Below are positions 19,021 through 62,196 of a stretch of 64,000 nucleotides of DNA, piece after piece. This DNA comes from Tubulanus polymorphus (lineage: Eukaryota; Animalia; Nemertea): the NCBI RefSeq assembly GCF_964204645.1, contig NC_134036.1, forward strand, positions 3,534,001 to 3,598,000. Reading direction: 5' to 3'. The stretch's first letter is position 1. Each line of letters starts with the position of its first letter. Both the position numbers and the translations under genes were made by a program. Below the pieces are notes generated by a model, which worked only from the letters and a program-made list of their open reading frames with translations, had not been told where the DNA came from and did no database searches.

Positions 19021-20050
19021 GGTTTTGCCCAAATGGTGGCGCTTTATGGATATGCAGTGGGACCTCATTTTCAAGCCAAATGCAGAGGGCCAGAAAATCT
19101 GTGCAGATCTAGTCATTGTATCCGGCATCATCAACATTGTCCTATTTAGGATGAGTTTCTGGGTTTGAAATAACACAATTATAATACAAGTGTCACTATA
19201 ACGAGGTTCCACTGCGTATAGGCCGACACATATGCGAGCGGAATTGTTATCCAACTTGAGCAGAGTGTACAGTTTGGTTCCTCTTAGTGTTGAACTTTGA
19301 AAGAGACATACCAAACCTGTTGATTGACAGCGGAAGAATGCCGATATTGAAAAACAAGACAACAAAAATTGAGAATAAAAAGATGATTCTTTGTCACCCT
19401 GACTAGCGACTAGCACTTTCATATTTCAGTTCTTTTATTGTTTCTTTTCTTAAGTTTTATGTGCTTTATTTATTAGTGAATTATACAATGATTGTGTTGA
19501 ACAATGAAGGGTGCTGGAAACAGCGATGAAAGCTGTATCCCTGTCTCCTTATATCTCCATGAATTGGTCCAAGACAGAGGCATCGTCCAGACCAACAATG
19601 TCTCCAGTACTGAGTTTGTGAAATAGCATAACTTGTCAATCCTCCTAAGTCCAGAAACCACAAGTCTCCTCACATAGTCCTACGAGTCCAGAAAAGCAGC
19701 TATCTCTCTGCTAATGAGTCCACCAGGAATAGCCACAACCTCCTCTCCCAACAGGTCGACTAATCTTTTCCAAACCGTCCTCTCGGGGAACAACCTACAA
19801 TTAAGATTCGACAGACCACTTACCCATCTTTTTGCTACCGATGTTCAGCTGAACTGAAATCATCGTCGCAGCTTTGACCGCATTCAAAATCTCCTGTAAA
19901 ATACAAACGAAGAACAGAGCATTAATATTTCATTCAGAACTCTAACACTACAATACTAAACATTTATGACGAAGTCAAAACTAATTTCCATCGCATTAAA
20001 TCCTTGTAAAGTTAAATGAACGTGATAATAAGGATGTTTAGCTGCTAATC

Positions 20051-20116
20051 AAGCAGGCCGGGACGAGTGCAATTTGAATTCGAAACATGCAAATATTGCA
20101 AACATCACAACCTAGC
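20051..20116 (-). ncRNA. mir-92: miR-92 family precursor, copy 1 (mature 3p 20074-20053, AAUUGCACUCGUCCCGGCCUGC)
   Basis: Mature arm matches the miR-92 family (seed AUUGCAC). The 5' arm AGGUUGUGAUGUUUGCAAU pairs with it to form a ~60-nt hairpin. Confidence 0.93.
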
Positions 20117-20167
20117 TCATCGCAATGAATCTCTCGACATGAGACGAGCGGATGATTTGTAGGCCTA

Positions 20168-20240
20168 GATGGCAGGCCGGGACAAGTGCAATTTGATAGT
20201 CAGAGATTTACAAAATTTGCACCTGACCAGAACCGCTATC
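20168..20240 (-). ncRNA. mir-92: miR-92 family precursor, copy 2 (mature 20193-20172, AAUUGCACUUGUCCCGGCCUGC)
   Basis: miR-92a-like mature arm; 5' arm GCGGUUCUGGUCAGGUGCAAAUU; basal pairing GAUAGC/GCCAUC. Confidence 0.92.
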
Positions 20241-20557
20241 ACGAGACCCCGATATACGTAATCCAACCGTCGGATGACCGCCAATATTTCATGAGGTTGC
20301 AATTGATTCGAAATTTCCCGATTCAATATCAACCTGCAGCCTGGGACCAGCCTCGTCAGAAAACTCACTATCATAGCACGTAGTCTGAACTATCGCTTAT
20401 TAAAAGTGTGCTTCAATGTTTAACTTATACCTTGTGTTTGTAGTTAGTTCATTGAATGCTAATTAATCGAACGGTTGTCGGTCCAAGATTCAGATTGATA
20501 TCGATAGTTGCATTAACTACGCCGACAGTTTTTCGGAATTCGTAGAAATATCGACTA

Positions 20558-20633
20558 GATATCGGCAGGCCGGGACCAGTGCAATTTGATAACGGAACTG
20601 AACAAATTGCGCCAGTCGCAACCTGCTAATATC
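20558..20633 (-). ncRNA. mir-92: miR-92 family precursor, copy 3 (mature 20586-20565, AAUUGCACUGGUCCCGGCCUGC)
   Basis: 5' arm AGGUUGCGACUGGCGCAAUUUG; extended basal stem GAUAUUAGCAGG/CCUGCCGAUAUC. Confidence 0.94.
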
Positions 20634-20968
20634 GTCGCCTCGTTACAACGCTGAAATCGAAACAACAGACAACTGCTTACCCGGCACAATTGAACTCGGA
20701 AATAAACGGATACAGTCGAGTTAGGCTTACTCATGCGTTACTATGTAAGATAATTCAAAGATCGTCTAAGCCGTAACTAAGATCATAAACTAGATAAGCA
20801 ATCAACACTTAATAGTAAAGTATCTAGTCGTTCCAGCACTCGTGAGGCATTAACAACTCAACTGTATCCGTAATTTTCAAGCGAATTTTTACATTTTTAA
20901 CGATACCGCGCTCGACCATACTAGCAACGTTTTCCAGTTGCGACGACAGAACGAAGAAGCCGAGCTAA

Positions 20969-21037
20969 ACGCAGGCCGGGACGAGTGCAATTTGAGTAAA
21001 TATTCGTAACAAATATTGCAGCCGCCGCGTCCTACGT
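20969..21037 (-). ncRNA. mir-92: miR-92 family precursor, copy 4 (mature 20992-20971, AAUUGCACUCGUCCCGGCCUGC)
   Basis: Mature arm identical to copy 1; divergent 5' arm ACGUAGGACGCGGCGGCUGCAAU still pairs. Confidence 0.9.
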
Positions 21038-21094
21038 CGAACCGGCAATTCACCACGGCATCGACGACATGTTTCATCTCGTCGCGAGCGTCGT

Positions 21095-21182
21095 GAGACG
21101 GTTTTTCAGATATCAGAATATCAGCATTGATTGATGCAGTAGCAGAACTGACAAAAGTTTTTTCATCATTAAAACCGATCTC
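21095..21182 (-). ncRNA. SNORD38: Box C/D snoRNA, SNORD38 (U38)/snR61 homologue
   Basis: C box AUGAUGA (21169-21163), D box CUGA (21109-21106), terminal stem GAGA(U)CGGUUUU/AAAACCGUCUC. The guide UGUCAGUUCUGCU precedes D' (CUGC) and pairs 13 nt (2 G-U) with conserved 28S AGCAGAACUGGCG, with D'+5 on an A. The layout closely resembles human U38 as recalled (TGATGAAAACT..CAGTTCTGCTACTGA). Confidence 0.88.
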
Positions 21183-23744
21183 GACGCAACCGTAGACGAA
21201 CCGTCTGCTGGCATCCTCAGGTTGGCATGCTGTCTATCAACGCCCGCTGCCTGGCGAGCCTTTTAAGCGAAAATAACTAATGGAAAAATAAAACAGACGA
21301 AAAACAAGCGATTTAACGAATTCAAATGAAATAAAGAGTGCATTCTCTTTCGTAACGGAAGAGAAGAACGTGCAAAAATAAAACTGAAAGCGACTGAAGT
21401 CGTTGAAATCGTTCCCGACTTGAGAAAAATGAACTGCAACTCGAACGCCATCGTAATCGCCACGTGCCTGAGTAAGTCTTGTAGTCTTGTTACGTCGATG
21501 ATATTCTCGCAATGGCGAATCGGGGAAAATCTTGTCCGAAGATCTTCCATCTTTGACCTGTAAATATACAAAGAGAATAGAGGTTATTGCACGAGACGAT
21601 CACTAATATCGAACAGGTAGGAAAACATCATTTTCATGTACAGACTTTCAATCATAAATCTTGACCAACACATCATCATTCGAGAACCTAAATTCAAACA
21701 TTAACACTTTGGGCGGCCACTTGAATTTCACTTGCTTTTTACCCGACATGCACATCTGCTAAGAATCCAATCAATTAACACAGTCAAATACAGAAGTCAT
21801 AGACGGAATCTGTTTGATTCTACACGCGATCTACTAGTCTCAATAATTAAGACTTCTACTTTTTCTAAATCGAATTCCCTGATTTCCAGTTAGTGGCCAC
21901 CATGCATTCTTGAAGACATCTTACTTAAGGCTTCCAACAATTAGAGTACAATGTTAGACTGTTCAGTGCTAATTCTCTTACATCATTGACCAAAAACTTA
22001 TAAAGTCAAAAGACTTTTGCCGAATGACCCATCTTTAAGTCAACTTGGCATGAACCCTCCTTGTATACGACGAATAACTGTCACCGAAACCGTGACCTAA
22101 TATCAACAACATCGATTTGCTCCTCTTAAAAAGAAGGATGGAAAAATGCGCACGAAAAGGAGAAAAGCGTATTTCAACATATCATTCTTTTCATCGACGA
22201 GATCATTCATCATCGTCGTCGCAAGGCTGATCTTAAACTCTGTCAAAAAAAGGTCACGGAAAAAAAAAAAAAAAAACGCGTTAATGCGCGCACGATAACA
22301 ACAACGAGCGAGCGAGCGTCTCCGTCGCGCTCGAGGCATTGTCCGCGTATGTAAAAACATTCATTATCAGTCGAATCGTATTAAAAGTCAATATTGCCAA
22401 AAACGTCTTCGCGTAATAGCTTCTATATACACACACACATACGCAGTCTTATAAAACGATTGTTCAGACTATTGAAACGTGTTCCGTTTAAAAGCCATTT
22501 TTTCTATAGAATAGCTCGATTTTTTTCGCCGCTATTCGCTCTTTTGAAAAGGCTCCGCTACCGAAGGTCGACGTCGACAATAAAGGGCAACGACTGTAAG
22601 GACTAATAACGATATCGCGCGAGGCGCGGGTCGATTAATTCCTAGTTTCGTTATCGAGATCGATAATGAAGGCATCGCCCGAGAAAAAAAAAACGAAATT
22701 AAGTTTTCAGACCGACTGTAGATTAGGTGTCGCTATTGGTTAGGTACCGAAATCGCCAACCTAGAGTAACGGGAATGTAGGACCATTCAAAGTAAATAAA
22801 GGTGCCTATTATCGTTACCGATGACGAAGCCTTTTCATCAACTTTTGATCAAATGTGTAATAAGAAATCAGGAATAAAGCATAGAATTAACGATAAAAAG
22901 AAGATAACATTTCGAGACCATTTTTTGATTTTCCAAAGCCATAGAGAAAAAAAAACAACAAAATATCCATAGCTTCTTCTAGGGCCTGGAGAAAAAATAT
23001 TTTTCGAGCCCGGAAAGAACCCCGCGTACCTAAGCAGACTATAGGCCTAACCTCGATCCTCAGTCACACTAGCAACGCATAGGAATAATGTGTAAACCTA
23101 AACTGCGGTTAGGCCTGAGCTAAAACCTATCAGAAAGACAACTAACCCATTGATTTCGATTCATAAATTCGCAATCCGTATTCAAACAATTACGTGACTC
23201 ATAAAATCTACAATTTACGCCTTTTACGTATCTCACTACATCTAATACATCTAACATACGATTGCCGCGTTTAGGTCACGTATAATAACATTTCTACACC
23301 GAGCAACCCACGAACCATGTCCCGATCATAATAGACACCTGGTGTCCGCGTTACGAGACGGAAACAATTAGCTCATATATACTTTATAGGAGTTTAATAC
23401 GCCGATATTGTAAATCACTAATCTAACCTTAAATACCGATACTCGGAAATGAACTTCTTCTAAACCATTTTATTAATATAAGACGAAACTTAGAACCCAC
23501 ATGATATCCTTAGACGGGACCAAATTATTACTTACACCATCTAATACAAACATAATTGGAGCCTAGTTATGCAATGCCGTCACAACTTTAGTTAACTCGC
23601 GTCAAGCCTTACCATTAATGCTACAATTCTGATTTACAAAGCTGTTAATCGAAAAATGTAAAATTCCAATTCTACCTACTTCGTACTTCGTATCGATAAT
23701 TCCTATCCTAAACCGCGTAGACCTCGGCGTCAACCCGCGCCGCT

Positions 23745-23761
23745 GAAGAGAGGACCATGTG
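23745..23761 (-). promoter_or_regulatory. Candidate TCT/5'TOP-like start (CCTCTCTTC) preceded by a CACATG E-box
   Basis: Minus strand reads GCACATGGTCCTCTCTTCAGCGGCGCGGG in a CpG-rich patch, with splice donors downstream. Confidence 0.3.
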
Positions 23762-26198
23762 CTCGCGTCGCGTCGCTATTCGCATACTACCCCCGGCTCC
23801 TGTCTATAGAGCGACACCCAATGTTCGCCAGCACGTTTTACACGCCATCCAGCTTACACTATAGTATTATAGCCCCGGCACCGTTGAATAAAACCCGAAT
23901 TGAAAAGACCTGCATGACTGTAGATCTTACAAAACGACAATGACTTCGCAAACTCACAATGCACCAAGCTTCACTGGTCATGTATAGATCGGCAGTGATA
24001 ATGGCCTATAACGGGCTGTCGGAAAGGCGGTTTTATTCGCCGGTGGGTTATTTTCGAGGATTTTATGCCAACGCAAGGAATGAATGTATAACAAAGACAG
24101 GTTTTCAACTTTTTCCTAATAACCCTATGTGATTACGCAACCTAAGCCTCCACCTGTGATATAACATTATCGCATTATCTACCCACTGTTTGGATCCATT
24201 AGGGAGTAGGGGGAAGGTGTTAAAAAAACTATATAAAACCACTAGAAGCACAAAGTTTGTGTTTAACCATGAATACCAGTAGAAGTACAAAATAAAGAGA
24301 TCCAGAAATAACTTTTCTCTAGACATTTATCTTAACAGCAGCCCGAAATCAATGGCCCGCACTAGAAAACCGCCAGAAATTGTTAGGAATGAACAAACTT
24401 GAATTCAGAATTAACACATATTGCTGAGAATTTCAAATCAATCGTAAATAAAAATGCTGAAAAATACTAGAAACGCGCTAAACGCTAAATTCTTTTTTTT
24501 TCACTTTCAACTTATATATTTGAATATTATCCGAGTCATCTAGATTCCGACAACGACGACGAGTTTGACAGAGATTAAACAGAGCCGTTCAGTCGAGTCT
24601 GTGCGAACTGTTTAAACGTTCGAATTTGAAGATCAGAACAAACGCCAGCGTAACCCGAGCCTCCTATTTCTATGTGAAAATCTATTAAACCCTCCTGTCA
24701 TCGCGGCAGTCAAAACGAAATATTTCTCTTCCGCTCGTCGGGCAAACGGCCAATTTTAATAAAACTCGAGCGTGCGCCTGCCTTCGTCGAAACTTCGCGA
24801 AAAAGACCTAATTATCCGCGGCCAAAATCTACCCTAACTCGAGCCTAACTGTAGCCGGGAACTTCGCAATTTTTGCCCCAATAAACTTTGTCTTCATTGG
24901 TAGGATATTCTAGCCAGCAACCACTTAGCACAACCAAGAACGAGATCACACCGGCTTAGATCTATTTAGCATATCTAACATTGTTAAGACCCGGGATTAG
25001 TTCCGTAGTCATGGCTTAGACTTAGGACCGATCAAACTTAGTTCACCTATCTAATAATTGAACACCAATCTTAAAATCTAAGACCAGGATCTCGACGTAG
25101 GAACTGGCCGTTTGATTAAGATATAAAACCGCATTCGGACTTAATACGGGCTGCGCAACTGGGTCTAGAAAAGTGAGCAAGTTCCGCTCCTAAGCTCATC
25201 GAAGGTCAAGTTGCACGGTGTCAAGGCTTAGGTTTAAGTCTTCAGCGTCGAACTGACCAAAAAACGACGAAAATTCCAACCACGCGAAAATTAAATCCTC
25301 TCCAACAAAACCGCGCAGACTTATTTGAATAAATTTGTCTACAAATCCTTAAGAGGGATTAAGACCAGCGTTCATTATAGAAATTAACCATTCTCGATAA
25401 CATTAACATCACCGACAATTTCCGAGATGGGACGTTTTGTCTCCAGTCTAAATGGACGGCCACCATGGAGACAATGCCCGAATACGAATAGTTTAGATAG
25501 CTTTATCTGTTTGCAAACAACGCCCTTGTCAGCGGGAGTTCTAAATAAATATCGAAGTCAATATGGGGGGATCAATCAAAATTATTCGAACCCCTAGGCA
25601 GCGAGCTTTGTTACGCGAACATGGAAGAAATTATAATTCCGTATTCAAAATTTATAATTACGACCAATTATTAAGGAGAAATAGATCAGTAGATCATATA
25701 GATTTCCAATGAGCTGAACAAGTGCAATGCATGCATGCATCGGACTGCCGAAGAATTCGAACGGATAAATTCCGACCCCTTTTTACTAATCTTCCATTAA
25801 AATGAATGAATGACTCAATTCAACTTAACATTTACACTATTAGAATTTATAGGTGATCGAATGACAAACGGAACTCAATCGCTCGGAATTGTGATTTCAT
25901 TATTTCGTTACGCAATATTTGAGGACGAACCAACGAGGCCTCGCTATATCATCGCTTACAACAACGAACAGAAAAACCTTAATTCCTTCGGATAATAATC
26001 CCCTCTTCCTTCCATTACTCAACGAATGTCATTAGCTAAGCTTTAATAACTTCCTCACTTGAACCACGGTATTATTCTAAAGTCAGAAGTAAACGTTTCG
26101 ACACTTTGCAAATAAATTAAGAGCGAAGAAGTTAGTAAGTGAAAGTAAACAACACCCTCAACGTAATGGGATTAATATTAGGAGTGAATTAATGAAGT

Positions 26199-26269
26199 GT
26201 AGCCTCAGTTAATGTTTGTAGTTCTCGTCATAAGGTTTTCGGAGACTAGCGATAGGCATCATCGGCTAC
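26199..26269 (-). ncRNA. Box C/D snoRNA, paralogue A of an unassigned family
   Basis: GUAGCC-G-AUGAUGC (C), CUAUCGCUAGUCU, CCGA (D'), AUGACGA (C'), CUGA (D), GGCUAC; 6-bp terminal stem. Confidence 0.8.
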
Positions 26270-26519
26270 GGACGACCAGCAATTTAACCAATCATCTCAA
26301 GATTTATGACAGGGTCCACGCATCAGTCATTCCTGGATAAAACGAGTTTTACGTCAAAAATTTCAAATTTGGAATTTATTAGTTAAATTGTCATTTAACA
26401 CTACCTAAACTAACAGCTAACCGAGACTTGATAAAATATATGATTCAAACACTATTATACCACGGTAGGGAACGAATTATACACGTTATTTAAGTTTTAT
26501 TGCATCCTTAAAACAGATC

Positions 26520-26743
26520 CAAGGATCCTACAATTCCTGGTATCCAGAATTCAAGGACTTTTTAAGGAGTAATTTTGAAAATTCAAGGAGGTTTTCGCGG
26601 TCATATATAAGGAAAAAAAGTCGAAAATCTAAAAACAAAATCCCCGTTTTTTTAAAATCCCCATTAAAGGATTTTCAAGGACCTTGAAAAATATTTTCAG
26701 AAATCAAGGAGTTTTCAAGGATTCAAGGAGTTGTAGGGACCCT
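26520..26743. mobile_element. MITE-like element between the two snoRNA paralogues
   Basis: Imperfect inverted ends CAAGGATCCTACAATTCCT and AGGAGTTGTAGGGACCCTG; internal TTCAAGGA repeats. Confidence 0.6.
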
Positions 26744-26782
26744 GAGATCGATTGAAAATGTGACCGATGAATTATTGTCGCG

Positions 26783-26858
26783 TGTAGCCTCAGTTATTTG
26801 TGAAGTTCTCTTCATATAATCAATATTCAGAGACTAGCGATAGGCATCATCGGCTACA
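26783..26858 (-). ncRNA. Box C/D snoRNA, paralogue B of the same unassigned family
   Basis: UGUAGCC-G-AUGAUGC (C), CUAUCGCUAGUCU, CUGA (D'), AUGAAGA (C'), CUGA (D), GGCUACA. The 7-bp stem is extended by UGUCG/CGACA. The guide is identical to paralogue A while the spacers diverge. Confidence 0.85.
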
Positions 26859-27800
26859 GACGACATCAGCAGCTTCAACTAGAGCGGCGCCACCTGTTGT
26901 TACAATGCTTAAATCAATCAAAGACTTTTACCCACGACTTTAATGATAAAATTTGTCTCTAAATGAAAACAACTTTCGACTTGTTGACTTACGACAAAAC
27001 CAGAGATACTAATCGAGGGCGGCCCTGACACGAACGCTGGTTTCCCTGACTCAATCTGCTAAGAATCCAATCAATTAACACGGTTGAATAAGTGTCAGAC
27101 ATAAGACGGAAACTGTTCAACAAATTTCACTAATTTTTGATTTTTAACAAAATGACCAGACTTTTTTTCAAAAAAAAAAAAAAAAAAAAATTCCCTAACT
27201 TGTCCCTGATTTCCAGGGTTAAGTGGCCACCTGTTAATTACCATCAACAAGCACCCGGTGAAGCTGACTCGGGATATACGGATTAACTGAACTTTAGCGC
27301 GCAGCATCTTGATAACCAACTGACCACTCGCGGTCAGTGTGAAAGGTACACTTGACCCATCGGATTCATCGTGCACGTTTATGAATTTATGACCAATGCC
27401 GTTACTAATGCGAAGAGACAAGTGTCGGAACAATGACGCACTGCTATCATCGGTCGGTCGCTATTGTCAGAAAAACCGGGTCGGCCATTTGTTCCCAGGG
27501 AGAGGACGACAATGACATCGACCGCTCTCGGGAAGAGGTTGATCAGGTGTTAGCGGCATAAATCACCTTTATATTTCCGAGGACGACGAGATATCATTAA
27601 AACGAAGAAGACAACCCGACGAATGTAGGTCGCACGGAGACAAAACCGACCAAGAACACCGAGTTGAGATCTCGAAAACTTCAAAGGACTCCCCTTCGAC
27701 GTCATTATCAAACGCGAGAGAAGAATGAACGTACCAATTCAAAGATGACGAAGTCATAAATTTGTCGTCGAGAATTCCCAGGAAGCTAAAGCTCGGGATT

Positions 27801-27872
27801 GAGAGAGAGAGAGAGAGAGAAGAGAGAGAAGAGAGGAGAGAGAAGAGAGAGAGGAGAGAGGAGAGAGAGAAG
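27801..27872. repeat. GA-rich microsatellite
   Basis: (GA)n with GAG/AAG interruptions. Confidence 0.95.
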
Positions 27873-28825
27873 AGGGCGAGGGTTTACCAATACGAGCCAT
27901 TATAGCGTATATCGCTGGCTCTTTTATGAAGAGAAGATGGCTATAAATGCAATTCTATGGAGTTATTGTTCGCGGTTTACTCAGCTTAGACTATACTATA
28001 CACACACACACTAGGTCATTCAATAATATCGAAACCGACTAAGAGGCCGGCTCCCGAGTAGAAACCACTCCTCGAAACACATTAAACGCCGACATCTCTT
28101 TAGTTAGTACAGATTCATACATCCGACAAACTTATCGCGCGAATTCTAAAGGTTCACGTGCTCTGCATAAAAACCAGGTCGAGCTGGTCCGAAAATTACA
28201 TGGTCCAAGTCTTAACCTTAAGCGGGGTCCAGGCCCAAAAAATTCATCCGATCCTATAATTCCTATATAACAATCCCCATTACCAGGCAGGGGCTTAACA
28301 CCGAAATCTTTTGACGATAGAAAACAGCCAATTGTCGAAAGGTAATTAGTCAATGTCAAGTTTGATGCGCGCACGCACAACGACAAAAATGAATTCCTCA
28401 TTTCTTTATTCATAAATGCCGACAAGAGATGACATTCTGACATCATAGGGGGAAAGAGGAGCGCTTTATAGAAATCGATCCATTTTTGAGTCGACTCTGC
28501 AGGTTTAGCCATTCAGAGCCGTCCATGAGTCCTTCGTGTCAGTCAACTTGAACTGCTAAGGCATTTTGAGTGGGGAGCTCAGAATTATAGAGTATTTTAC
28601 CCCTAAAATTTCGATTTCCTGAATTTTAGGAACTCTGTTATCCACAGTTGTTCATCTAAGTTTGATTTTGAAGTTCAAATGAGCTAATTTCGCAAAAGTT
28701 CTAACTTTTGAGTCTTTGAAAATGTATAACTGCGTAACAGAGTCCAAAATCGCGAAAAATTTTCTGCAGGGTTTGGGTAGTCATCTTACCACTGCGTCAA
28801 CTTGATGGCGAATCTCAAATCTTCG

Positions 28826-28906
28826 GGTGGCAAGGTATCAGAGTTGGCTTACGGTCAGCACTTCAGCAAATCGTTTGACATTGCAGGAACTCTTCATATT
28901 GCCACC
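28826..28906 (-). ncRNA. Weak box C/D snoRNA candidate
   Basis: 8-bp stem GGUGGCAA/UUGCCACC enclosing AUGAAGA (C-like), CUGA (D'), GUGCUGA (C') and CUGA (D). The D'-C' spacing is only 1 nt. Confidence 0.38.
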
Positions 28907-29048
28907 ACATTTTGTACAGTAAATTTAGAGCCCGCATTTGACGCAGGATCAGCCTAAAATTGAAGAGCGAAAAATATCAGATAATCTGATAAACCGTTAC
29001 GGTACAGCCCAGTTTCTGGGGACGAGATGAGGATTGCGTTGTCCGCGA

Positions 29049-29115
29049 AGCAGGCCGGGACGAGTGCAATATTGATTCGATTTATTAAACAACATCGCAC
29101 CAGTCACGACCTACC
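29049..29115 (-). ncRNA. mir-92: miR-92 family precursor, copy 5 (mature 29071-29050, UAUUGCACUCGUCCCGGCCUGC)
   Basis: miR-92b-like mature arm with 5' U; 5' arm AGGUCGUGACUGGUGCGAUGUUG pairs with it; about 8 kb upstream of the four-copy cluster. Confidence 0.94.
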
Positions 29116-29744
29116 CCGACGGAAACTTCTCCAGTTTTTATAATGGGGGGGGGGGGGGTTGGGCTACCGGAAGCACGCTTGACCAATTATCCGCGCTTGT
29201 GAGTTCAAATTCCCCACAATTTTACTTCGGGCAGCATTTGAACCCTGTATACTTACGCAGCACAAGTAGACCCTGATCACGGGATAAATATCATAAAACA
29301 ATATATACAAAACTGGGTTTCATTAATTCGGGATGCCTCGTAATGCCTCTTGCGACTTTATGGTTTTTATATACCCCGGAAACCAGATTTTTACCACACA
29401 ACCACAACCACCCTAGTAATAGGCCTAGATCCAAGTGTTCCCGACAGCTAAACAGCGATAAAAAATCGATTTTAACTCTGCCTAATTTGTGTATTTTGTT
29501 AAATATTTATGAAAAATAAGTCGGAAATAAAAATATAGGAATGACTTTGAGGAGCATAAAAATGACAAATAAATCCGAGATAATTCAAGGTGTTCGAACA
29601 CGAAAAAGGTTACTGAATTTTTTCAACAGATATGACAGGCTTCGAATTAAAGTTTAACTCGCTATAAATAAGATATTACTAACCAGGCGCCATTAACAGA
29701 TAAAAATACTAGCGACAAACAACACAAACACCGAGCCCCGAAAC

Positions 29745-29776
29745 CATGTGCGTTCAACATTGACTTCCGCTTCCGG
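29745..29776 (-). promoter_or_regulatory. Tandem ETS/GABP sites plus E-box; candidate promoter of the host transcript
   Basis: Minus strand reads CCGGAAGCGGAAGT (29776-29763), then CACATG (29750-29745). An Inr-like TCATTC at ~30002 is followed about 30 nt later by a G|GTAAGT donor. Confidence 0.5.
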
Positions 29777-32700
29777 TGGCGAGGGCGCAATCTTTTCAAA
29801 TTTTCCAAAACTCGTTCGATTTTGACTCGTATTTTCTCCCTTTAATCCCCAAAACGACCCCCTCAACGGCGATTATACCGACCTATGGGCCTTCGACTAC
29901 GACTCGGAGAAGTTTTTACGCGTTGACACCGCTTTCAAGCGGTGAAAATAGAGTTACAATTGAGCATTTACTTACCGGAGAATTTAGACGCGGCGAGAAT
30001 GAACGATAGACGGCGCTGTCGTACGTATACACGTAGTGCAATAAACAATGTCGAGTATGTCGAGTCCCGTAATTATCCAGCTCGAACTTATCGTCGATGA
30101 TTTTAATATTTCAGTCTTTCATTTTCCTCTGCATGGATTCTGAATATTATCCGTGTTTTATCCATGGATTAGTTGTTCTCCAATCGAATCAAATGGGAAT
30201 ATACTGTAAAATTCATGTAAACATATTTAGTTTTGAAACACCCTGTTTGTACTATTATAAACATGCCGATGTAGTGTAGATGGTGACTCAACTTCAGGAT
30301 CGTTGCTATTTACTATACTAATAGTCACAATGTTTTTCATCGTTATGACGAAATCTGTCGTGTTTCAGTTATGGCAACAAGAAATTTGTGAATGTTGCTG
30401 TTTTGGTTCTGATAATAAAATATTCCTCAATCAATATGAAATGTCAATTGGACATTAAATTTCTTTATTGTGAAATGATTTATTTTGACATAATATTCAT
30501 CAATATGATTTATAACGTCAATAAGTGACATTAAGATTTCTTGAATTTGCGAGCTTTTGTCAAAGGTTATTTAGTCTTGTAAGTCAAATCGTTTATAATC
30601 TTCTTACAAATTGCAGTTAGTCACCAAAAATGATTACATATCGTGTTTGCATCTCCCCATCTCATCTCCTCTGGTTATTCCTTACTGCAGGCTATTGAGA
30701 AAATTCGATGAAAGTCCAAGTCAGTTCCTTCCTTCGTCCAAGAAATAAATCGTCATCGAATCTCTACGCAATTATTTCATAGACAAAGCATAATATATTT
30801 ATTCCTTCCTATGACAATCATTCATCAAATCAAATTCATAGAATTCTTTACATCGTTTGATAATAGTAGTTAAAGATAAATTAATATATAAATGCAGGCG
30901 CTGCAGCACACGAATTAAACACACCATCGATATCACATGATGTATATATGATTTGATGCTCTGCTGGGCCCCGGAGTCCGGTTGCTCAAAAGTTGGTTAA
31001 AGATTCATTGGAACCTCGTTACAACGAACTCGGATAGGCCTACAACGATTCCTCGCATATAACAAATATAGAATTTCGTCCCAAGTAAGAAAATCTGATT
31101 AATTTCATACTGGATATCATGATCGGTTATGACGAACATATTTTCTGGTCCCCCTGAAGTTCACTGTAACCAGGTTCCCCACTGTAGACACCCGATCAAG
31201 TTAGGGGTTGGTAATGTAAGTGTGGTAGAACCTCTTGCCGGTGGTCGGGGCGTGATAAAGCTCGCGGCGAGTAATCAGTATGATTACTCGGAGGATTCAG
31301 AGCGAATTTAGAATAACTATAATCTATAACATAACAAATGTTGATAAACATTTGGTCACACACAGCGATCAGTAACATTTCTCTTGATAGGATATACGTG
31401 CGAGTGGCAAGCGTGACATTTTTTAGAACTATTCGTAAACCCATCATAATATTTTCATTCGGTAACAAAATTCAGCTCGAATACGTATAGATATTCATCA
31501 CTGAGATAGAACTAACAGTTTTATAGATAAAAAAACAAAAACAAGGTTAATTGCACCGTAAAGTATAAACCATATTCAATCGAATTATCACACTTCTACA
31601 TACAGTTACAACAAAGAAGCATAGCTCATTCATTACTTAGTATATATTTTCTTGCAGTGAAACAGTGAAAATTCATTGCACAAATCTAAACTAACAGAGG
31701 TATACAAATCAATCTGCAGCCTGGTAATTCTCCCAAGATGCGGTCAGGACTTCAACTTTCATGGTGCATATCTCATGTATATATATTCATAACTTCACCT
31801 TGAGGCATTTGTAATTGAAAATGAACTACAAACACCAGGCATTTGATCAGCACACTTCCGAAAACTGATCGCCCACACTTCATATGTGTTCAGTACTTGA
31901 CCTGAGACATTTCTAATTGAAAATGAACTACAAACACCAGGCATTATACATTTTATCAGTCCACAGATACAATGATGATGTATCTAGGGGGACGTGGTTG
32001 CAGGCTGAAGATCGACTGATACCATGCGTATCTCTTTTTCTCGGTCGTAATAGAAAAAAAAACACGCGTGAAATTCATTAAAACTTACATTCATTTTAAA
32101 GTACATTAGAATATATATCTAGTTCAATGTAGTTCATTCGTTAAAACTCTCAAACGGGTTCAATCAACGCGATAAAAATCAGTTCATCGATTTATAAGAT
32201 AATCATTAAGCGACAGGATGTAATATTAATAAATATGGTTGTAATAATAATATCAATACAAAATGTATTCTGTTCTGTACATTGATTCAATAAACACACG
32301 TGTTTTACATATATACACTAATCACTATAGTTCGCACGATATTCCGTTTTTTGCACAGTTAGTTATTGATTTAGAAGAAAAGTTGGCAATTATAGAAAAT
32401 CTTGCTAACCTAGTAAATCAACCTGTCCTTCTCGGTACGTTACGAAATAAGAGAGTTCCATCTCATACCGCTTGAATGTATTACTTTACCGATAATGGGA
32501 TACCGCCACTCTCCTTCCAGAAAACACTGGGTCATTCGTAGTGAAAACCAGTTCATTTTCGATGAAATTTGAACTTGATTTTTAGGCTTCCGAGTCCGAA
32601 AATTATCAAGCCGGTCTTAGAATGGATATACGATTCGCTTTCTCACACGGAGTGTTGTAAAGCTTTCACTAAAAACTGATTTACTAAAAGTTGCGGTAAC

Positions 32701-33521: not shown

Positions 33522-46333
<12,812 letters not shown>

Positions 46334-61638: not shown

Positions 61639-62196
61639 ATGATATCGTTCTTCCAACGAATCCTCGACTGGATCAAGAGCCTTTTCTGGAAAGAAGAGAT
61701 GGAACTGACGCTGGTCGGGCTGCAGTACTCCGGTAAGACCACCTTCGTCAACGTGATCGCGTCCGGTCAGTTCAGCGAGGACATGATACCGACCGTCGGC
61801 TTCAACATGCGCAAAATCATGAAGGGCAACGTGACGATCAAACTGTGGGACATCGGCGGCCAGCCGCGTTTCCGCAGCATGTGGGAGCGTTACTGTCGCG
61901 GCGTCAACGCGATCGTCTACATGGTCGACGCCGCCGACCACGACAAGATCGAGGCGTCGCGCAACGAGCTTCACAGTCTGCTCGACAAGCCGCAGCTGCA
62001 AGGCATTCCGATTCTCGTTCTCGGCAACAAGCGCGACCTGCCGAACGCGTTGGACGAGAAAGAGCTGATCGAACGCATGAACTTGTCGGCGATTCAAGAC
62101 CGCGAGATCTGTTGCTACTCGATCTCGTGCAAGGAGAAGGACAACATCGATATAACGCTACAATGGTTGATCCAGCACTCGAAATCCGGACGATGA
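61639..62196 (+). CDS. ARL8: ADP-ribosylation factor-like protein 8 (lysosomal small GTPase), intronless CDS
   Basis: 185 aa: [91 protein letters not shown]. Confidence 0.98.

Follow-up and report, generated by a model that had tools for sequence, protein, structure and literature searches.

Human non-coding genes that host small RNAs are usually divided into two distinct classes, SNHG and MIRHG (PMC7719101). Units that mix the two kinds of product have also been described: in Arabidopsis (sno-miR775 and sno-miR779) and in rice, dicistronic genes carry a small nucleolar RNA (snoRNA) together with a microRNA (miRNA), and their products are matured independently (PMC4660826). In the DLK1-DIO3 domain, MEG8 with its SNORD112/113/114 arrays and several miRNA clusters lie on non-coding genes, and it is debated whether they derive from one or from several primary transcripts (PMC6406543). 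As for the miR-92 family, Ciona savignyi has an intergenic cluster made of miR-92 only, with three copies (csa-miR-92a/b/c) within about 1.1 kb (PMC8001136), and the Drosophila gene jigr1 bears mir-92a and mir-92b (as cited by PMC4238352 and PMC8001136). Here, we will focus on a locus of the nemertean Tubulanus polymorphus at which five miR-92 hairpins share one strand with box C/D snoRNAs predicted from their sequence. It lies in a stretch of 64 kb (contig NC_134036.1, positions 3,534,001 to 3,598,000), hereafter the window, from whose first nucleotide all coordinates are counted unless another contig is named.

The reading that we favor, and to which we give a probability of roughly 0.55, is that the gene-poor region from about 19.45 to 30.0 kb would be a spliced and polyadenylated RNA polymerase II (Pol II) domain, transcribed from the minus strand and devoid of any conserved open reading frame (ORF), the introns of which would carry the five miR-92 hairpins and three box C/D snoRNAs. 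We will first examine the small RNAs themselves and then the evidence that connects them to a common transcription unit, before considering how they could be matured and how this locus compares with those described elsewhere.

The miR-92 content is the most clear-cut feature of the locus. A pattern designed on the miR-92 3p arm matches the window at five sites, all on the minus strand (20054-73, 20173-92, 20566-85, 20972-91 and 29051-70). It finds no match in 100 shuffles of the window, and the same five sites are its sole matches in the whole 268-Mb genome. At each of them the mature seed AUUGCAC (nt 2-8) is found on the 3' arm, inside the conserved 22-mer, and the surrounding sequence folds as a hairpin in which the conserved arm is the 3' one, with energies of -26 to -48 kcal/mol and z scores of -2.0 to -6.7. 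Once the five hairpins are aligned, the 3p arm proves invariant except at nt 10 (C, U, G, C and C), which is the sole variable position of the mature sequence and whose 5p partner changes along with it (GC, AU and UG pairs). Indeed, the consensus structure comprises 24 pairs, 4 of which show compensatory changes, the partner of nt 10 being among them. The preliminary description of this stretch, made from the sequence alone, had announced five miR-92 hairpins on this strand, and seed, arm and fold agree with that claim at all five.

All five are also matched by the Rfam mir-92 models (RF00464 of clan CL00137, and RF03554), every time below the gathering score, the best match reaching 37 bits against a threshold of 47 (E 1.2e-6). 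To appreciate what such scores mean, one can consider a comparison set of 27 metagenome contigs carrying an invertebrate-type miR-92 (120 kb in total, 21 of them with at least 400 nt of upstream sequence), which were retrieved with a pattern that human miR-92a/b cannot match and none of which is taken as human. The 22-mer of that pattern lies, in most of the 27, inside a hairpin matched by mir-92-type models, and the miR-92 hairpins of these other invertebrates obtain 23-42 bits, which is equally low. The Rfam threshold is thus not discriminating here, and we therefore took the seed, the arm and the fold as the criteria of membership. The same set shows that local amplification of miR-92 is widespread: tandem groups of 2-4 hairpins are present in contigs L022, L032, L014, L020, L025, L027, L028, L031 and L038.

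Four of the hairpins are close to each other. Hairpin 1 (20040-20125, minus strand like all that follow) has its predicted mature 3p at 20053-20074, with a C at nt 10 and an exact match to the 3p pattern; it folds at -26.1 kcal/mol (z -2.0), scores 29.8 bits with mir-92_2, and shows no polymorphism in X1, one of the public sequencing runs discussed below. Hairpin 2 (20160-20250; predicted 3p 20172-20193) has a U at nt 10 that covaries with its 5p partner, a z score of -3.5 and 27 bits with mir-92_2. Hairpin 3 (20550-20640; predicted 3p 20565-20586), with a G at nt 10, folds at -41.3 kcal/mol (z -5.9) and is the one that gives the best mir-92 score mentioned above. Hairpin 4 (20960-21045; predicted 3p 20971-20992) has a z score of -3.4. 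Hairpin 5 (29035-29130; predicted 3p 29050-29071, starting with U) folds at -48.3 kcal/mol (z -6.7) and obtains 36.2 bits with mir-92_2 and 29 bits with mir-92, all these individual scores being below the cut-off; a strong acceptor-like site is found downstream of it, at 29015. A TATAAAA box (29136-29142), itself preceded by a run of 13 C, stands upstream, at about 30 nt from the 5' end predicted for its 5p arm. This spacing is the geometry of the capped pre-miRNAs that are defined by their start site, yet the long basal stem of hairpin 5 is rather that of a Drosha substrate.

No other miRNA-like hairpin came out of a hairpin scan of the minus strand of the interval, and no other Rfam miRNA family was matched, save for weak overlaps on the same five hairpins. 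The locus is therefore a cluster of miR-92 only and not one of the miR-17~92 type: the likeness to the latter that had been drawn at the outset does not extend beyond miR-92, as no hairpin of the miR-17, -18 or -19 families is present.

The second component of the locus consists of box C/D snoRNAs, of which the best characterized lies directly next to the hairpins. This SNORD38/snR61-type unit (21099-21179, minus strand) has a canonical C box (AUGAUGA) and a canonical D box (CUGA), a variant D' box (CUGC) and a terminal stem of 7 bp. It is matched by the Rfam family RF00476 (snR61/Z1/Z11, clan CL00051) at 21103-21174 with 46.8 bits, above the cut-off of 45, in keeping with the SNORD38-like RNA that had been noticed at 21095-21182; of the two Rfam checks that the preliminary description had proposed, this one is thus positive, while that of mir-92 gives the five matches below the gathering score. 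We located the ribosomal DNA (rDNA) of this genome by a primer-type pattern and took the 18S and 28S sequences from an Rfam scan of one rDNA unit; the guides were paired with these rRNAs of the organism itself. The D' guide is complementary to a conserved site of the large subunit rRNA (...AAGCAGAACUGGCG...) and pairs at 12 of 14 positions with nt 1473-1486 of the 28S; the fifth-nucleotide rule selects the A, for a predicted Am1477. We take the context of A1477 to be the site targeted by yeast snR61 and human SNORD38, equivalent to yeast A1133 and human A1858. The rDNA itself is found as an array on the contig of the window (G000:C12:6990000-7240000) and at C16:169878-183571, with adjacent 18S genes about 13.7 kb apart; the 18S is 2,012 nt long, with GC-rich expansions, and the 28S 4,228 nt.

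This guide is not unique in the genome. Seven further SNORD38-type C/D snoRNAs, with a canonical D' box, are found at G000:C6:3657498-3661374 in the introns of a DEAD-box helicase gene of the DDX6/Me31B type, in most cases two to an intron and about 170 nt from each other. In contrast, RPS8, which is the host of SNORD38 in human and is found on contig C8 of this genome, contains no SNORD38 match. Several snoRNAs per intron are thus tolerated, as shown by the two per intron of the DDX6-like gene, and it is therefore likely that the endonucleolytic separation of small RNAs borne by the same intron is routine in this organism.

Further upstream on the same strand are two C/D units that are paralogous to each other, as the preliminary description had proposed. 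Paralogue B (26197-26269, D' box CCGA) and paralogue A (26778-26863, D' box CUGA), 588 nt apart, both have a C box AUGAUGC, a D box CUGA, a C' box UGAAGA or UGACGA and a terminal stem of 6-7 bp. They have in common a 5' block of 39 nt that is 95% identical and includes the whole D' guide, which is the same in both, and their 3' halves differ. A UACUAAC branch-like site follows paralogue B at about 63 nt, and a pyrimidine tract with AG at about 95 nt, a placement that would be typical of an intronic snoRNA. In Rfam, paralogue A matches SNORD70 at 32.9 bits, below the cut-off, and paralogue B has weak matches only. No further copy of this family was found in the genome, to which extent it is confined to the locus. 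Their D' guide could form a perfect duplex of 10 bp with nt 1124-1133 of the 18S, through positions 2-11 upstream of D', and would select U1127. We consider this position as a candidate target only: the chance of such a well-placed 10-bp duplex is about 2.5% per random guide, and we know of no methylation reported at the equivalent site. As for longer complements of this guide elsewhere, a 13-mer complement occurs just twice, which is the level of the controls.

A fourth C/D-like element (28827-28907, minus strand) had been presented as weak, and so it stays. Its C box is a variant (AUGAAGA), its 8-bp stem lies 1 and 4 nt off the boxes, it has no Rfam match, and its best pairing with rRNA does not lie where the D box would require it, so that no convincing rRNA target emerges. 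It turned up in our purpose-made C/D scanner and in no other search, and we do not retain it as a snoRNA. Taken as a whole, the output of this scanner is nonetheless strongly skewed: over the 11.5-kb interval, the plus strand yields none, and the minus strand 4 distinct C/D-shaped units where 0.23 are expected (P ~1e-4) from a background of 7 per 345 kb-strands, established on the rest of the window and the 27 foreign miR-92 loci. All the small-RNA elements of the locus are on the minus strand, as initially stated.

How are these elements connected to one another? The main argument comes from strand composition. In this genome, an excess of T+G is a sign of the sense strand, and the minus strand is T+G-rich over a domain that extends from 19516 to 30000. 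A cumulative (A+C)-(T+G) walk along the plus strand reaches its minimum at 19516, rises by 0.097 per nt up to 30000 and is flat thereafter, which makes it the steepest 10.5-kb stretch of the window; 20 of the 21 bins of 500 nt are positive inside the domain, against 55 of 106 outside. The rule on the sign held at six control gene regions of known strand, with negative slopes for the plus-strand genes (DDX6-like, a coronin paralogue, S8e-like and mannosidase) and positive slopes for the minus-strand ones (RPS8 and a coronin-like gene). Its exception is found in disordered coding exons at 40-44 kb, as a coding composition can cause. The domain therefore speaks for transcription with the minus strand as the sense strand across 19.5-30.0 kb, uninterrupted from one element to the next. 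Within it, a (CT)n-type microsatellite of the minus strand (27800-27885) and a run of 21 T (27170-27192) add to the local T excess.

Splice motifs are biased in the same direction. With a strong donor defined as GURAGU and a strong acceptor as a pyrimidine tract followed by YAG, the minus strand has 7 of each, and the plus strand 3 donors and no acceptor. On these motifs we can place a putative first exon (29976-30005) that would end in CCG|GUAAGU, with its strong donor at 29976. At the other end, between 19.9 and 19.45 kb, an acceptor, a 70-nt exon, a GUAAGU, a second acceptor and an AATAAA follow each other, in an order that resembles the end of a gene. The predicted penultimate exon (19824-19893) would be bounded by a pyrimidine tract with a CAG acceptor at 19893 and by the donor UGG|GUAAGU at 19824, and the predicted last exon (19450-19514), whose first nucleotide would be at about 19514 just after an acceptor-like UUUCCAG, contains the AATAAA at 19469-19474. 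No Pfam match was obtained among the ORFs of the interval that were tested, and the longest ATG-initiated ORF on the minus strand of the unit (126 aa) has neither a homologue nor a paralogue in the genome. The single host that the preliminary description had postulated is thus partly and indirectly supported, by the asymmetry domain, the bias of the splice motifs, the absence of a conserved ORF among those tested and the predicted terminal exon with its AATAAA.

The promoter signals that had been put forward along with this host fared less well. The splice motifs and the terminal AATAAA are indeed oriented along the minus strand, and a tandem ETS-like motif (CCGGAAGCGGAAGU) is present there as one occurrence at 29763-29776, but the E-boxes are at chance level (2 CACGTG in 11 kb), and we reject their enrichment. 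In a 5' terminal oligopyrimidine (5'TOP) gene, the transcript begins with a C that 4-15 pyrimidines follow; the pyrimidine runs present here (for instance at about 23750) are not tied to any start. A search for CpG-island promoters is uninformative here, because the CpG observed/expected ratio averages 1.23 across the window.

Public sequencing data bring a complementary view of the locus. Three runs from one study cover it, and all of them are genomic DNA, as can be seen from their contig totals, which scale with the shared words, and from their unspliced contigs; they show haplotype variants and repeat junctions only. No RNA run was matched by our query, which was a whole 10-kb stretch and can miss short RNA-derived matches, and an exact-protein look-up of two ORFs of the window returned no match. 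In run X1, a diverged haplotype shows 34 substitutions in the 2,268 nt covered between 19400 and 21781, none of which falls in the 283 nt of hairpin arms and SNORD38-type RNA (P ~0.011). The only two variants of hairpin 4 (21001 and 21002) are in its terminal loop, and another one is found a few nt past the 3' end of the SNORD38-type snoRNA. This pattern fits purifying selection on the small RNAs, within the limits of a small sample. Over a larger part of the window (19400-23450), the X1 haplotype differs from the assembly by about 1.5% of substitutions and by several small indels, one of which removes 13 nt at 22688.

Several observations weigh against a single host. The strand asymmetry indicates which strand is transcribed and not that a single promoter is used, and repeats or T-rich tracts may account for part of its size; the exon model was built purely on consensus motifs, and the public runs at the locus are all DNA; the weak fourth C/D element would sit in a predicted exon and not in an intron; and the D' box of the SNORD38-type copy is non-canonical, in a genome that offers seven canonical copies elsewhere. 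Six AATAAA hexamers are moreover internal to the unit and, together with the TATA-like box of hairpin 5, which could mark a separate start, they leave room for several units. One can thus imagine independent minus-strand units, in which hairpin 5 would depend on a promoter of its own, the C/D pair on a separate small host, and the SNORD38-type snoRNA with hairpins 1-4 would belong to a third one starting somewhere at 21.6-24 kb, where internal starts could be marked by two strong donors (23536 and 23958) and by a patch dense in CpG (22.0-22.75 kb). That hairpin 5 lies 8 kb from the other four goes in the same direction. However, the asymmetry domain is continuous between the elements, save for one 500-nt bin, TATAAA occurs 7 times on the minus strand in 11 kb, so that one of them near a hairpin is weak evidence, and the extended basal stem of hairpin 5 is typical of a Drosha substrate within a longer transcript. 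We consider such a partition into separate units as possible but doubtful.

Two other explanations can be considered. The small RNAs could be the passengers of a coding transcript, carried either in the 3' untranslated region or read-through of the upstream gene, which has its ORFs at 37.4-42.7 kb on the same strand, or in an unrecognized small coding gene, as both predicted terminal exons are open in one frame (judged by eye, on exons read singly and unjoined). This is very unlikely: an AT-rich upstream tail and its AATAAA signals end at about 30.45 kb, the slope of the asymmetry shifts sharply at 30.0 kb, none of the ORFs tested has a Pfam match and the longest one from an ATG has no homologue, and an exon of 23 codons open in one of three frames is what chance would give. 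It could also be that the SNORD38-type copy is a decaying duplicate without function, the seven of the DDX6-like gene being the working copies, and that its adjacency to miR-92 is accidental; its CUGC box, the canonical D' boxes of the C6 copies and the lack of an adjoining snoRNA at the 27 other invertebrate miR-92 loci would agree with this. Yet it is the copy beside miR-92 that outscores every C6 copy in Rfam (46.8 bits against 36.6-41), its C and D boxes are intact, its terminal stem (7 bp) exceeds those of the other copies, and it remains free of variants in X1 while its flanks vary. It has diverged from the C6 copies throughout, except in its boxes, its guide and its C' region. Degenerate D' boxes are, besides, common in working snoRNAs, and we regard this decay as unlikely.

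If the host that we favor is real, its functioning could be envisaged as follows. Transcription of the minus strand by Pol II would begin near 30.0 kb and extend to the AATAAA at about 19.47 kb, producing one primary transcript or overlapping ones with more than one start. The Microprocessor would excise the five hairpins, from the 3' arm of which Dicer would yield the 22-nt miR-92, and the assembly of C/D small nucleolar ribonucleoproteins (snoRNPs) would shield the snoRNAs during the exonucleolytic trimming of the intron. The situation is particular for the SNORD38-type snoRNA, the 3' end of which is about 53 nt upstream of hairpin 4; as there is no strong splice site in this gap, the two should share a precursor. 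We would tentatively propose, with the odds leaning against it, that both are matured from one intron fragment, the Drosha cut at hairpin 4 opening a 3' entry for the trimming of the snoRNA. Should this be true, the locus would be to animals what the dicistronic snoRNA-miRNA genes are to plants and what the Rnt1-dependent release of polycistronic snoRNAs is to yeast, and the output of a growth-associated miRNA would be tied to that of an rRNA methylation guide. It would offer a simple natural system in which to ask how a single RNA accommodates Microprocessor cleavage, splicing and snoRNP assembly, and it raises the question of whether ribosome modification and miR-92 output are co-regulated.

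In its genomic surroundings, the locus comes directly after a gene of its own strand and is followed at once by the end of a convergent gene. The latter is a GH38 mannosidase, whose N-terminal exon is at 7.8-8.2 kb on the plus strand; being convergent and on the opposite strand, it is ruled out as the host. On the other side, an AT-rich upstream tail, with AATAAA signals at about 30.48 kb, ends at about 30.45 kb. The interval had been described as lying between mannosidase and coronin, which is true of the order of the genes, but the recognizable coronin exons, on the minus strand, are at 46.1-46.3 and 43.1-43.4 kb and not at 30 kb, and disordered ORFs of the same strand intervene. The latter (37426-38049 and 41578-42723), rich in Ser, Pro, Gln and His and without a Pfam match, are downstream of the exons of the coronin propeller and may either extend coronin as a long tail or belong to a gene of their own. 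The locus also contains two copies (21740-21900 and 27040-27250) of a repeat that is dispersed in the genome, measures about 150-200 nt and has a conserved core of 30 nt (at about 21754-21790 in the first copy). It has at least 860 first-look candidates genome-wide and causes a spike in depth of several thousand in the DNA runs, and it looks like a miniature inverted-repeat transposable element or a short interspersed element. The direct repeat at 21754/27054 was thus rejected as a duplicated host exon. Further away in the window, an ORF of 185 aa on the plus strand (61639-62196) encodes a GTPase of the Arf/Arl family (Pfam Arf, E 5.5e-47) and looks intronless.

How does this locus compare with those already described? 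The preliminary description knew of no such arrangement, which does not stand as far as its kind is concerned, since snoRNAs and miRNAs are mixed both in the plant genes and in the DLK1-DIO3 domain (PMC4660826, PMC6406543); it stands for one particular association, that of miR-92 and a SNORD38-type guide, which we found neither in the literature searched nor at the 27 other miR-92 loci. More generally, neither Rfam nor the C/D scanner detected any C/D snoRNA beside miR-92 in these 27 contigs, a set that may lack relatives of this genome, and the pairing therefore looks lineage-specific.

Compared with the miR-92 clusters of Ciona and Drosophila, the locus shares the presence of local duplicates with the same seed, about 0.1-0.8 kb apart and regarded as polycistronic, but it differs from them by its five copies, one of which is 8 kb off, and by their interleaving with box C/D snoRNAs. 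It shares with the vertebrate MIR17HG (miR-17~92) the principle of a non-coding host bearing miR-92, predicted in our case, and is unlike it in that miR-17, -18 and -19 are missing and E-boxes remain at chance; to our knowledge, MIR17HG does not carry snoRNAs. As for the guide, human SNORD38A/B (in RPS8 introns), yeast snR61 and plant Z1 belong to the same Rfam family or clan and have the same conserved large-subunit guide. The copies of this genome are found, unlike in human, in the introns of the DDX6-like gene and at the miR-92 locus and not in RPS8, which shows a turnover of the snoRNA host.

The closest parallels are those of the mixed units. The plant dicistronic genes likewise place a snoRNA and a miRNA hairpin a short distance apart and feed two maturation pathways, from a shared precursor that in our case we infer; they differ by their own TeloSII/TATA promoters, by their young and non-conserved miRNAs and, for one of them, by an H/ACA snoRNA, whereas the present locus associates an ancient bilaterian miRNA with a pan-eukaryotic C/D guide, probably intronic, in an animal. 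In the plants, snoR775 is unchanged in dcl1 mutants (PMC4660826). The DLK1-DIO3 domain also has C/D copies and miRNA clusters on one strand of a non-coding domain. It is, however, subject to imprinting, restricted to mammals and very large, and it carries orphan snoRNAs, while the locus described here is compact (10.5 kb) and one of its snoRNAs has the canonical rRNA target of SNORD38. Mixed snoRNA/miRNA units were thus already known, and what is new here is the compact joining of an ancient miRNA family and a canonical rRNA guide in a non-vertebrate animal.

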